A DNA stretch of 64,000 bases from Oikopleura dioica (Eukaryota > Animalia > Chordata), in contig OU015567.1 of the NCBI GenBank assembly GCA_907165135.1, forward strand, positions 682,001-746,000, read 5' to 3'. Made by a program: the position numbers and the translations under genes. Every line of letters begins with the position of its first letter. Position 1 is the stretch's first letter. Shown piece by piece: positions 2,841 to 7,444 of the stretch. The notes below the pieces were generated by a model that saw nothing but the letters and a program-made list of their open reading frames with translations, was not told the DNA's origin and searched no databases.

Positions 2841-5800
2841 TTATTCTTCTTTTTCCAGCTTTGCCTTCATACTCTCGTAGTACTTTAAGTCGCGATCAGA
2901 CACCGAGCTCTTTATCCTCTTCAAAGCGCGCTCAAAGTGGCTCATCGTGACGAAAACCTCTTCTTCCTTGTTTTCGCTCTTCTCTACCTCCATCTTTTCC
3001 TCTTCAAAAACATGATTTGATGAAAGGAGCAGTTCTTTTGCGGCGATCGGAAATGAGAGTTTAATTTTCAAAAATCGATTTATAACCTCGTTTTTCTCCG
3101 GCTCTTGGCGCAGGTTCAGTATCAATGTACTCAACGTTGTAAATTATTTAATGAAGATAATAAAGGACAATTCATTAAGCAACCTCAACTAGAGGATCTC
3201 GAGTTACAAGTTAAAGAGCAGCCGCATGCGGCTGGCTTCGATAAACTAGGTGAAAAACCTGACTCAGGGTTCGAAACAGTCAATAAAAAGCCGCACAACG
3301 GTATGAACAAAATCGAAGACGCTCCGCGGCTTTTTATTTAACTCTTTTGAATCCTGACTCAGGTTTTTCACCCAGATTGCCGAAGCTAGCCGCATGCGGC
3401 TTCGAGAACAAGAATAAAGCCGCGCTTCGCGCGTTTTTGATATTTTAACAGCTCGAAGCCGCAAGCGGCTTCTCGATTTGAATTTTTTAAAACAAGATTT
3501 GAGGAAATACTTCTAATATTAATTAAACTCGTATCAGTGCTGCTTCTCTCACAAGCGCAGTTGCATCGGCGCCGGAATAATTGACAGTTTTGTCGATAAT
3601 CGCATCCAAGTCAACATCACTTCCAAAAGGCGGCTTCACACCGTTTCTCGTTACTTTCAAAATGATTTGCTTGATGTCTTCTTTGGAAGGAAGACCGACG
3701 TAGACGGTTTTGTCGAGACGGCCAGGGCGCAACACGGCGGGATCGATGATTTCGTACCGATTTGTTGCGGCGATGATGTAGACGTCTTTTCGGTCTTCTA
3801 GGCCGTCGAGTTCTGTTAACAATTGATTCACTTTTGGCGGTTGTTTTATTTTGAAAATAAATGGAAATTAAATACATTTTGATCGGATATGTTAAAAGAG
3901 AGAGAGGTTTTGGTTTGTCATTTTATCAATCAACAGATAGAAGGAAGGGTGTTGATAATCTGAATTTCAGAAGATAGAAGTTTTCTAGCACTAAAAAATC
4001 TTGATTCAGGTGCATTTTCTATTCTCGATGTGCTTCTTTGATATTCGAGTCTTTCATTTCATTAAAAAAGCTATTCAACTAAAAATTTAAGCGAGCGAGC
4101 ATTTTCACTTGTAAAAACAGAAGTTTCATTTTGTTCTTTTCGAATCTCAACTGACAATTGCTCCTTTTATACGAAAAATCTCACCTGTTGATCAACCTGA
4201 TTTTTTATCAGTAAAAATAATCGACCCAGTTCCCAGCTTTATTTCTAGGTCAACCTGATTCTCATCTATTCTCTCCCCCTTTCTGTCACGAAAAGAAACC
4301 GTTTTCCTATTCTGGTCGCTCCCGAGTTCGCCCCTTCTGCTCTTCTGGGCGTCAGTGCGTCGATTTCATCAAAGAATATAACACACGGCTTAAAAGTAGC
4401 GTAAATTATTAATGAAAATGTATTCTGAGCCGCTTTGAGAAACAAAATTCTCCATCAAAGTCAGAATCTTAGATGTTATAGGTTCGCAAAGATCACTGCC
4501 ATTTCGCAGCCTTCACTTTTCGAGGCCAAATTGAAAGAAATCGTCAAGGCCGAATTATTACCTTGGAAGACCTGGCGCGGGTGAAAACTGATCGGACCGC
4601 GCGTTCTGATTCTCCGACGTACATGTTCAAAAGCTCTGGGCCTTTGACGGAGATGAAGTTTAGGCCGGATTCATTCGCGATTGCTTTTGCTAGAAGAGTC
4701 TTTCCGCATCCTAAACAAGTGAAAATTAACGAAAATAATGGTCAATGTACCTGGTGGGCCAGTGAGCAAAACGCCACTCGGTCGACTCAGACCAAGCCTC
4801 TCAAATTGCCTTGGATTTCTGATCGGCGCTAGAATCGACATCGACAGCTCTTCTCTAATCTTTTCCAGGGCACCAACATCATCCCAAGTTGTATCAGGGA
4901 CTGTAGCGAAACCTTCTCGTTTAGCGCTTGGAACGACTTTTTTCAGAGCCTTTTGGAAGTCGCCTAATTCGATTGACATTGACTCTTTTTTGGGATTCGT
5001 GAACACCATAATTTCAGTCTTGATTTTAAGATTTTAATAAAAAATTATTCCCGAGCACCTGATTAAATGATACTTAAAGTAAAAGTACTAGGATTACCAA
5101 ACGGTCTATTAAATCCCCTTCCTAAAACATCGTCCGACAAATCAATCTCTTTCCATCTCTCCCAAGCGCTCTCTCTATTGAACTTTTTCTCTTCTCCAGT
5201 TTCATTTTCTGCTTGACAAATTCTATCGATAGCTTCCTGGGCCGCTTCCCGAGCGAGTGCATCTAAATCGGCTGCGACATAGCCGGGCGTCAGGCGCGCC
5301 AAGAGACGCAGCTCACAATTTGCTGAAGTAAACGGTTTAAAAAGCGCCGCTTTAATAATTTGATAAGTTCACGACGTCGATTCCTCACCCGATAATTTCA
5401 AATCCTTGCACACAACCTGCATCACCGCCAGTCGTTCTTTTTCACTTGGAATTCCAATCGCTATTTCTTGATCGAATCTTCCAGCTCTTCTCAGCGAGCT
5501 GTCGATGTTCTCCACTTTACTGGTCGCCCCTAGCACTAGAATTTCATTGCTATCGACGTCGTCCATGCACGTCAGAAGCTGGGCAATGATTCGATTCGAC
5601 ATTTCTTTCGTGTTTTCATCTCTTGACGAGCAAATCGCATCGAGCTCGTCGAGGAAGATTATACAGGGCGCGTTTTCTTTCGCGTTTTCGAACAATTGTC
5701 TGATCTGGGCTTGAAAACCTGCGTAGAAACCTGAGTCAGGGCTTTAGAAGCCACCACGCGCGACTTATTTTATCTAGCAAGCGGCTTCTCTAACCATGAC

Positions 5801-7444
5801 ACAGGTTTGTTCATGGGTTTTCAAGCCCAGTATCTGATATTCTTCTCTGAGCCGCCACTGACGCCCGAGACGAGTTCTGGCGTACTGACTGAAATCATCT
5901 TGACTTGAATCTCGCCCGCAGAACTTTTGCACAAAAGCGTTTTCCCGGCGCCAGGTGCCCCGTGCACTAGAATGCCGCTCGGTGGCCGGACGCCAAGAGT
6001 CGCGTAAATTCGCGGCTCGTGGAGGTGCATCATTTGCCGCAGAATCGTTTCTTTTGGTTCTGATAAGCCGCCGACAGATGAGAATGTTTCTTCGGGGACT
6101 TCGGCGGAGAATCGGTCGATTTTGTCTTTTCTGAGGCGGCGCAGTTTTGAGATTGGCGCTTGATCCTATAAAAGTCTTAATAGGTATCATCATGATACTA
6201 TCATGTTATAGACGATCATCTAATAATCACTCATCAAGTCGATATTATTTGATATTTTATCATTTACAAAGACGCGCTTTTTTTAAGGTGGGCCAAGTTA
6301 TTTCTTCCACTTTTTCATTTTAATACCCGGACCACCATATATAATTCGAATCAGCGAAAAAAATCTCGAAACTTGACCTTTTTATTTTCTCGAAAATCAC
6401 TTCCGGTTGCGATTCTAGAGCCGGAAGTTGAATAAATTTAGGAGTTACGGTAAAGTGTGACCTATCAAATTGATGCTCAGAAGATTCGGAGTCGTTTCAT
6501 CATCAATTCACTAGAAAAAACAATCCCAATCTCGATCAAACCGACCGGTAAAACTATGAAAAGAGGCATAAATTGATGATTTTTTTTTCTATTTTTACCG
6601 GCTGGTATGACCGCGGTTTGCTAAAATTCCTTCTTTATATGAATAAAGATGTTCTAAGCTTCAATTTGATATGCTAAATATATGCTATTCACATAAATTT
6701 CGGCAACTTCCGGCTCTAGAATCGCGACCGGAAGTGATTTTCGAGAAACAAAAAAGGTCAAATTACGAGATTTTTTTCACTGATTCTAAATATATATAGT
6801 TATCCGGGTATTAAAATGAAAAAGTGGGAGAAATAACTTGGCCCACCTTAAAAAAAGCGCGTCAAAGGTATATGTCCGGTCGTTGACATAAGCTTTAGTC
6901 GAGGTAGAAATTTATATTCGTAGCGAAAGGCTGATTAAATTCGTTTTCTCCAAAAATTTAATCTTGATTTACGGTTTCCAATTGCCGTTACTAAAATGCC
7001 ACTTCAAGGTTTCAAAATTATCGAAATTCTACTTTTTATCCCGAAAAACAAACCTCAAAATCATCGTCGTCGCTTTTCTCCTTTCTTTTTCGATCCAGAC
7101 TGACGGGAGTTCCATTTGTCATTTTATTGACCCTAGAAAACTCAATGACCAACGCGATCAACAACCTGATCTTACGCTTTCGGAGTGCCTCGATACTGAT
7201 TCTGCAGAATTCCATTCATATTCGCCCCAACATCTGCCGACGCTTGAGCTGCTCGAATTTGTGCCATTAGACGGGGCCCGTGTTTACTCCACACTTCTTT
7301 GACTTGTTTCCGGAAGACGTTTTCTTTCACGCGCTGAAGTTTTCTGTTGTTGTTTCTGATCGTTTCATGGTCCAAATCGGGCGAGAACTTGCCTTTCTCC
7401 GCGAGAATTTCTTCGATTCCAGTCAAAATCTCGCGCTCATGCAT
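2841..7444 (-). CDS. NVL: Nuclear VCP-like AAA+ ATPase (two AAA domains), multi-exon
   Basis: N-terminal [19 protein letters not shown] resembles the NVL2 N-domain. D1 GAPGAGKT / [11 protein letters not shown] / [11 protein letters not shown]2 [55 protein letters not shown]. Confidence 0.9.
3220..3401. mobile_element. Composite hairpin element in an NVL intron (inner CTAGG...CCCAG element with CCTGACTCAGG arms)
   Basis: Palindromic agccgcatgcggct at both ends. Inner arms ctaggtgaaaaacctgactcagg and cctgactcaggtttttcacccag. Confidence 0.65.
5705..5830. mobile_element. 126-bp CTGGG...CCCAG element inserted in NVL coding sequence, near-perfect 8-bp TSD
   Basis: TIR ctgggcttgaaaacc at both ends. 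Flanks tgtctgat (5697-5704) and tatctgat (5831-5838). Removing the element plus one TSD restores [11 protein letters not shown]. Confidence 0.85.
6287..6847. mobile_element. 561-bp foldback element with TTAA TSD and GG...CC termini (Kolobok-like), in an NVL intron
   Basis: TTAA at 6283-6286 and 6848-6851. Arms of about 150 bp starting ggtgggccaagttattt are near-perfect inverted repeats. Confidence 0.8.

Follow-up and report, generated by a model that had tools for sequence, protein, structure and literature searches.

The question raised by this locus is how a gene can maintain its protein when a transposable element interrupts one of its coding exons. The stretch of DNA analysed here, referred to as the window (64,000 nt), originates from the Okinawa lineage of Oikopleura dioica. 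The locus lies at about 682.5-693.6 kb of contig OU015567.1 (assembly GCA_907165135.1; OKI2018_I69 chr2) and contains an NVL gene, whose first AAA domain (D1) is interrupted by a miniature inverted-repeat transposable element (MITE). NVL/Rix7 proteins are essential for the biogenesis of the 60S ribosomal subunit in the organisms tested. The insertion is apparently homozygous in another individual, and the gene remains strongly constrained; as far as can be judged from genomic sequence, the element therefore most likely leaves the pre-mRNA by splicing, as a transposon-born intron.

The NVL gene and the inserted element

The closest solved relative of the interrupted domain was human NVL (9bji, 1e-99), ahead of p97 and Cdc48. 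In the profile search seeded with the window peptides, almost all the named matches were NVL, Rix7 or ribosome biogenesis ATPase. With its two AAA domains and NVL as the nearest characterised relative, the gene belongs to the NVL/Rix7 type II AAA ATPases, and its earlier assignment as the NVL orthologue was upheld. All the NVL exons are intact in the window. The features of the locus are as follows (window coordinates):

2841 to 7444, minus strand: whole NVL gene, about 10 exons
5839 to 6165, minus strand: exon part upstream of the insertion, from the D1 Walker A motif GAPGAGKT onwards
5831 to 5838, minus strand: duplication copy 1, sense ATCAGATA, holding the single mismatch, T for the ancestral C at 5832
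5705 to 5830, no strand assigned: MITE with the ends CTGGGCTTGAAAACC...GGTTTTCAAGCCCAG, 126 bp, terminal inverted repeats
5697 to 5704, minus strand: duplication copy 2, sense ATCAGACA, which codes for I, R and the first and second base of Q after the exact removal of the element
5389 to 5704, minus strand: exon part downstream of the insertion, including Walker B and ending with KDLKLS, followed by a canonical GT-AG intron

Read in the sense orientation, the interrupted exon runs GGC GGC TCA GAG AAG AAT, ATCAGATA, CTGGGCTTGAAAACC...GGTTTTCAAGCCCAG, ATCAGACA, ATTG TTC GAA AAC GCG. The layout proposed in the preliminary description, a 126-bp CTGGG...CCCAG element that splits the coding helix of NVL D1 and is flanked by an 8-bp duplication, was confirmed. 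The two duplication copies agree at 7 of 8 bases, and the ancestral base at 5832 was inferred from two other lineages, L001 and L002, described below. The predicted stop and frameshift were also found: translation continuing from the upstream exon would reach an in-frame stop, TGA, at 5823-5821, and the element with one duplication copy amounts to 134 nt. The flanking peptides rejoin exactly as GGSEKN|IRQLFENA. In terms of human NVL, the site is located between ...SGESEQK and LRELF..., directly after pore loop 1. No gap or insert was detected at this point in any aligned NVL, Rix7 or p97 homologue, including the 6-residue insertion for which the alignment of relatives had been proposed.

The arms of the element (5705-5752 and 5783-5830) are 48 nt each and 79% complementary, and the sense RNA of the element was predicted to fold into a single hairpin of -73.3 kcal/mol (z = -9 compared with shuffles). 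Over their outer 15 nt the two arms are identical; the 10 arm mismatches are all located further inward. The chance of such a layout was estimated by hand calculation, with no script, to be about 0.014; the clustered mismatches may therefore be inherited from the source copy. The divergence of the arms was rejected as a clock on these grounds, and the single duplication mismatch alone bears on the age of the insertion. Thus, of the two arguments previously given for an old insertion, the mutated duplication base stood and the diverged arms did not; the insertion may be old. Two other explanations of the region were discarded. A split gene or a trans-spliced second cistron is contradicted by the lack of a start codon and by the fact that a split would cut the D1 fold. 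A tblastn match of 10 element codons (5734-5705) to the SGxSGESE motif of homologues was regarded as a chance resemblance.

The element is a member of a hAT-like MITE family with 8-bp duplications that is abundant in the Okinawa lineage. Its terminal 15-mer was enriched in the 64-kb window, where it occurred 8 times when up to 3 mismatches were allowed (2.3 expected), and none of 100 shuffles reached 8. At least 7 related copies or fragments were found in the same window. In the DNA run of the second individual, X1, the word depth of the element was about 1200 compared with about 60 in the flanks, a roughly 20-fold difference. The inner part of the arms recurs across the window, and the aligned ends resulted in the family consensus ...CCCTGACTCAGGTTTTCTACACAGGTTGCCGAGCCCAG. 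A family copy at about 8785-8884 is flanked by an 8-bp duplication, ATTAGAAT/ATTCGAAT, matching at 7 of 8 positions; the duplication length of hAT-superfamily MITEs is thus present in both this copy and the NVL copy. The hAT superfamily has the terminal motif YARNG and the target consensus nTnnnnAn. The ends of the NVL element read CTGGG rather than YARNG and those of a related copy at 54044 CAGGG; in the NVL target, position 2 is T and position 7 is C. No second exon-borne copy was found within the window when it was strictly scanned for inverted ends with an 8-bp duplication.

Both ends of the family, read outward, show CTGAC, then GGTTTTCTACACAG and then GTTGCCGAGCCCAG. This module was seen in the copies at about 8785-8884, 35066-35144, 39958-40042, 10596-10711 and 3338-3389. 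It resembles a branch site, a pyrimidine tract and two AGs, so that an acceptor-like module would be available in either orientation.

The site in other lineages and in a second individual

The site is empty in the sister lineage, as determined from two independent metagenomes (L002, a JGI marine contig, and L082, an ENA contig). Both read GAGAAGAAC joined directly to ATAAGACAGCTT, the join being also given as GAGAAGAAC followed by ATAAGACAG, and the protein is uninterrupted. These contigs are genomic, because the other introns are kept, and their exons are about 88-90% identical to the window. A relative with 56% identity (P0164) is likewise uninterrupted at the site. In a third lineage, represented by the ENA metagenome contig L001, a different MITE of 222 bp interrupts the same pair of NVL codons (L001:73-310). 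This MITE has perfectly complementary ends of 16 nt, AGGGTGGCGATTTCGG, and internal 19-nt tandem repeats. The target of this element, with the duplication ATATCAGA/ATTTCAGA, is only 2 bp off that in the window, and the two duplications share the core TCAGA. The insertion in the window is therefore lineage-specific, and the same spot was struck twice independently. The locus thus offers a three-state comparison within one species complex: an empty site, one MITE and another MITE two bases away. A productive removal in L001 would need an AA-AG intron (exact) or a GG-AG intron (one additional lysine). In the ENA gene call on this contig (P0001, L001:209-628), a TAG within the element is rendered as glutamine, and the call is flagged as not translating to the query; its 139-residue "protein" is an artefact running from the MITE into the exon.

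The insertion was also detected in the second individual, which bears on the question raised earlier about other haplotypes. A contig of the X1 DNA run, whose span of about 5445-5726 was derived from contig-end distances, covers the exon-MITE junction at a depth of 60, equal to the full single-copy depth, and no contig joining an empty site was reported for X1. In the adjoining exon the contig differs from the window at 5 sites, all of them synonymous third positions. The insertion is therefore present on another SNP background, with purifying selection visible beside it. The presumed constraint on the locus was borne out between lineages as well, where dN/dS was about 0.02-0.04 (0.02 against L002 and 0.03 against L001), with dN of 0.03-0.04 and a saturated dS of 1.2-1.8. 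On the window branch, 27 synonymous and 6 non-synonymous unique changes were counted in 129 codons. In the 16 codons directly upstream of the insertion, only synonymous differences were found among the three lineages by our own reading of the alignment.

The objections foreseen in the preliminary description were a rare or heterozygous insertion, a second intact NVL copy and an assembly artefact. Only a single O. dioica NVL (P0220) was present among the best 120 matches of the profile search with the window peptides. Together with the X1 junction at full depth and the synonymous polymorphisms, this makes a rare null allele and a second gene copy unlikely. An assembly artefact was rejected, since the independent X1 contig carries the junction. 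Other introns at the locus differ between the X1 haplotypes, one of them over 4992-5114.

Candidate splice junctions

All the in-frame, stop-free removals ending with AG were enumerated. No GT donor gives an intact protein, and the 5' site must therefore be non-canonical. The only exact removals were AT-AG introns, 5838-5705 or 5833-5700, both of which give the same mRNA; the requirement for an AT...AG intron claimed earlier was reproduced by the enumeration. The G-starting options were a GA donor at 5834 with AG at 5710, 5719 or 5731 (3, 6 or 10 additional residues, respectively) and a GC donor at 5826 with AG at 5705 (4 additional residues). The GA-AG solution from 5834 to 5719 with its 6 added residues, put forward as the best G-starting alternative, thus stood, although it is not the sole in-frame option of this kind. 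The solutions discussed below are as follows (the bar marks a splice junction):

5700 to 5833, minus strand: preferred candidate intron, CAG|ATACTG...GATCAG|ACA, AT-AG, 134 nt, putative exact removal
5719 to 5834, minus strand: alternative GA-AG intron, 116 nt, adding SFQAQI
5710 to 5885, minus strand: GT-AG intron of the public gene model, deleting 16 conserved residues and adding TQ

The reading in which the element and one duplication copy are removed exactly, by a non-GT intron whose most probable form is CAG|AT...CAG|A, was assigned a probability of about 0.5. According to this reading, the non-autonomous DNA transposon would have been inserted into the D1 exon of NVL after the cryptic lineages split. 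In the AT-AG register at 5833-5700 (CAG|AUACUG ... AUCAG|ACA), the duplicated CAG|A copies would serve as the exon end and the acceptor, and the long terminal hairpin would bring both splice sites together. Splicing would join ...AATATCAG to ACAATTG..., resulting in the mRNA ...GAGAAGAATATCAGACAATTGTTC..., and would restore a motif that is uninterrupted in every aligned homologue. The donor CAG|AUA keeps the exonic AG, U at +2 and A at +3 of the 5' consensus, and the acceptor AUCAG|A equals the duplicated proto-splice site. The mismatch of the window duplication (C>U) corresponds to the intron position +2 in the AT-AG register, and that of the L001 duplication (A>T) to the position -5 of UUUCAG|A. 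In both lineages the mismatch is thus located in the would-be intronic copy and is shifted towards the consensus. The same CAG|A...CAG|A geometry, with AA-AG ends, is present in L001. The spliceosome of O. dioica is also permissive, as 11-12% of its introns are non-GT/AG (PMC8008620, PMC4122922). The DNA directly shows the anatomy of the insertion, its family and lineage specificity, the constraint on the gene and its presence in another individual; the splicing and its junction are what we infer.

Several points weigh against exact removal. The first and last intron bases normally pair as G-G or A-C; with A first and G last, the pairing is poor for the second catalytic step, and such introns are mechanistically disfavoured (PMC13326754). 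The described non-canonical introns of O. dioica begin with G, being GA-AG, GC-AG or GG-AG (PMC4122922, PMC7072748). The branch-point, pyrimidine and CAG module inside the element, with its AG at 5719, is the acceptor expected under ordinary scanning, and this acceptor cannot give exact removal. The hairpin would bury the branch site. With the age of the insertion being poorly known, most of the constraint signal could predate it. Finally, the RNA runs X19-X21 had about 12 reads each on 2700-7600, none of which crossed the junction. These runs carry the same species name, yet they match at 90-95% and originate from another cryptic O. dioica lineage; species labels are insufficient for choosing RNA evidence for the Okinawa genome. 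Searches for transcript-derived proteins across the junction resulted only in genomic fragments and the public gene model, a representative protein search gave no close full-length relative, and an exact look-up of the open reading frame running from the exon into the element matched nothing.

The AT-AG removal and a partial exonisation with GA-AG ends are the two leading readings. The latter, in which the GA donor at 5834 (UCA|GAUACU) would be joined to an AG inside the 3' arm of the element, most readily at 5719 with 5710 and 5731 as alternatives, was regarded as possible but doubtful. NVL would then gain 6 (or 3, or 10) residues directly after pore loop 1. This solution is in frame and stop-free and, like the O. 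dioica introns described, has G at +1, and GAUACU matches the donor consensus at +4 A and +6 U. Its acceptor CUACGCAG|G (CGCAG) lies 16-17 nt past a branch-point-like CTGAC (5735-5739) with a pyrimidine run, and the module from CTGAC to the acceptor is conserved across the MITE family. However, the donor UCA|GAU differs from the AG|GAA context of O. dioica GA-AG introns (PMC7072748) and from the TAG|GAA of the other GA introns of the NVL gene, and no homologue carries an insert at this point of a protein with a dN/dS of 0.02. The public annotation skipped GA-AG here although it accepted one elsewhere in the gene; this is a weak argument, since the GA-AG intron 5121-4985 was missed as well. An exact removal in a register that does not end with AG, either AUC|AG...AUC| (AG-UC) or UCA|GA...UCA| (GA-CA), would be similar to Fritillaria introns and would yield the same mRNA as the AT-AG solutions, as do all the registers within the shared duplication. 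Terminal bases A...C pair with a geometry like that of G...G (PMC13326754), and the same registers are present in L001 through the shared TCAGA core. Nevertheless, the triplet here is ATC and not the YAY of Fritillaria. AG is the commonest 3' site in four of six tunicate genomes (43-90% of introns), and the U2AF duplication tied to non-AG ends is specific to F. borealis (PMC13326754). Such a register is scarcely to be expected.

It was considered unlikely that the allele is non-functional or leaky, with NVL function supplied otherwise or with a recent, mildly deleterious insertion lacking regular splicing. No RNA supports any productive junction, every productive 5' site is weak, and MITE insertion polymorphism is common at the locus, as illustrated by the differing introns of the X1 haplotypes. 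Against this, the insertion was at full depth or homozygous in the second individual on a different SNP background, the polymorphisms of the adjoining exon were all synonymous, the exons were all intact, and no second NVL was found among the best 120 matches. The established requirement for NVL/Rix7 in 60S biogenesis points in the same direction. The remaining explanation, that the public gene model is right, was judged very improbable. Its GT-AG intron 5885-5710 drops the last 48 coding bases of the upstream exon and most of the element, and no other solution combines a canonical donor (UCA|GUACGC) with an AG acceptor; AUGUSTUS chose it in g4075.t1. In contrast, the deletion would take out two elements of D1, strand beta2 and pore loop 1, whose conservation extends from human NVL to p97, and the 16 codons concerned differ only synonymously among the three lineages. 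The model is also demonstrably wrong nearby, where ESMSIELG is lost, a neighbouring gene is fused and the last exon is missed.

This model, P0220 (Oidioi.mRNA.OKI2018_I69.chr2.g4075.t1, 956 residues), maps exactly onto 8636-3526 of the window. At 8636-7586 it takes in an upstream FKBP-like gene, which is thereby fused to NVL, and because it stops at 3526, the final NVL exon (about 3040-2841) is left out. The intron before that exon, also absent from the model, holds a palindromic copy of the MITE family of the NVL element (180 bp, 3220-3401) and probably starts TAC|GAGTTT, with GA-AG ends. In place of the conserved ESMSIELG the model has GRGFNRPFG, because a GT-AG solution was chosen over the GA-AG intron 5121-4985 (minus strand, 137 nt, GTTTTAG|GAAGGGG...CCCAAAAAAG|AGTCA). 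L002 is without this intron and reads DDILESMSIEL unbroken. In total, three other introns of the NVL gene are GA-AG by homology or annotation, and two of them, 5121-4985 and 4307-3834, fit the O. dioica GA-AG donor context with TAG|GAA. The bridging of the element in the public model is probably wrong. The locus exposes a systematic weakness of the public annotation, as predictors force GT-AG solutions that delete conserved residues.

Comparison with known intron-generating systems

Introners were reportedly described as DNA-transposon-born introns by Huff et al. in 2016. Such spliceosomal introns are known from Micromonas, Aureococcus and dinoflagellates (Gozashti et al. 2022, PMC9860276). 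One of their splice sites can come from the duplicated target, and the element leaves with one copy of the duplication without a scar (PMC9860276). Oikopleura and tunicates are unmentioned in the main text of that survey (PMC9860276). Like introners, the NVL insertion is a non-autonomous element present in many copies, has inverted ends and a target duplication, and interrupts a coding exon where relatives have no intron. It differs in that the exact solution would lack a GT, and indeed any G, at its 5' end, and in that splicing is predicted here.

Non-canonical introns derived from MITEs were reportedly found in Fritillaria borealis by Henriet et al. in 2019, and they are established in this larvacean genus (PMC11282704, PMC13326754). 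Most of the Fritillaria introns have AG/AC or AG/AT ends, both junctions show a YAY triplet, and splicing relies on duplicated U2AF; this duplication of the U2AF subunit is confined to the lineage of F. borealis (Soo et al. 2026, PMC13326754). The U12 spliceosome has been lost in larvaceans (PMC13326754). The present case shares with Fritillaria a larvacean host without the U12 spliceosome, inverted ends with target duplications at species-specific positions, and non-GT/AG ends that would be handled by the U2 spliceosome. In contrast, the NVL triplet is ATC and the ends would be AG-TC, so that neither the YAY triplet nor AG/AC or AG/AT ends are found. The consensus of U12-type AT-AC introns consists of the donor ATATCC, the branch site TCCTTAAC and an AC end. 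The NVL candidate also starts with AT, but a U12-type intron was rejected: the donor is ATACTG or ATCAGA, there is no TCCTTAAC branch site, and the intron ends with AG.

O. dioica is the classic animal case of wholesale intron turnover. According to the passages on this subject in PMC4122922 (with reference to Denoeud et al. 2010), PMC7072748 and PMC8008620, 76% of its introns are at new positions and 11-12% are non-canonical, and PMC4122922 gives reverse splicing as the proposed source. The G(A/C/G)-AG introns belong to the same species complex as the NVL insertion, and three other introns of the NVL gene are of the GA-AG type. That class has G at +1 within AG|GAA, whereas the NVL case points to MITE insertion with possibly A at +1. 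No description of MITE-derived introns in Oikopleura was found in the literature searched, which did not include the original Denoeud et al. 2010. While transposon-born introns are known already from several protists and MITE-derived ones from Fritillaria, a candidate MITE-born intron in Oikopleura is new here.

If the exact removal is true, transposon insertion would create introns in O. dioica, a chordate, and its spliceosome would tolerate introns that do not begin with G, a trait connecting Oikopleura with Fritillaria as the extreme case. A more general proposal can be made tentatively, with more doubt than confidence: the U2 spliceosome of Okinawa O. dioica would precisely remove A-starting MITE-born introns (AT-AG, and AA-AG at the sister twin). 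MITEs with 8-bp duplications would accordingly be an active intron generator in a chordate, and one CAG|A proto-splice site in an essential gene would have been struck repeatedly, in cryptic species that are separate from each other. This would replace reverse splicing as the explanation for the massive intron gain of Oikopleura.

Two further repeat-rich regions were observed in the window. The canonical 888-nt NVL intron at 6166-7053 consists mostly of a 593-bp inverted-repeat element (6271-6863) of very high copy number, with an X1 depth of 1300-3500, and in one X1 haplotype 185 other letters are present in place of 786 nt of this intron. Outside the gene, a near-perfect palindrome of about 560 bp at 11796-12357 gave several nested matches in the scan for inverted ends with a duplication.

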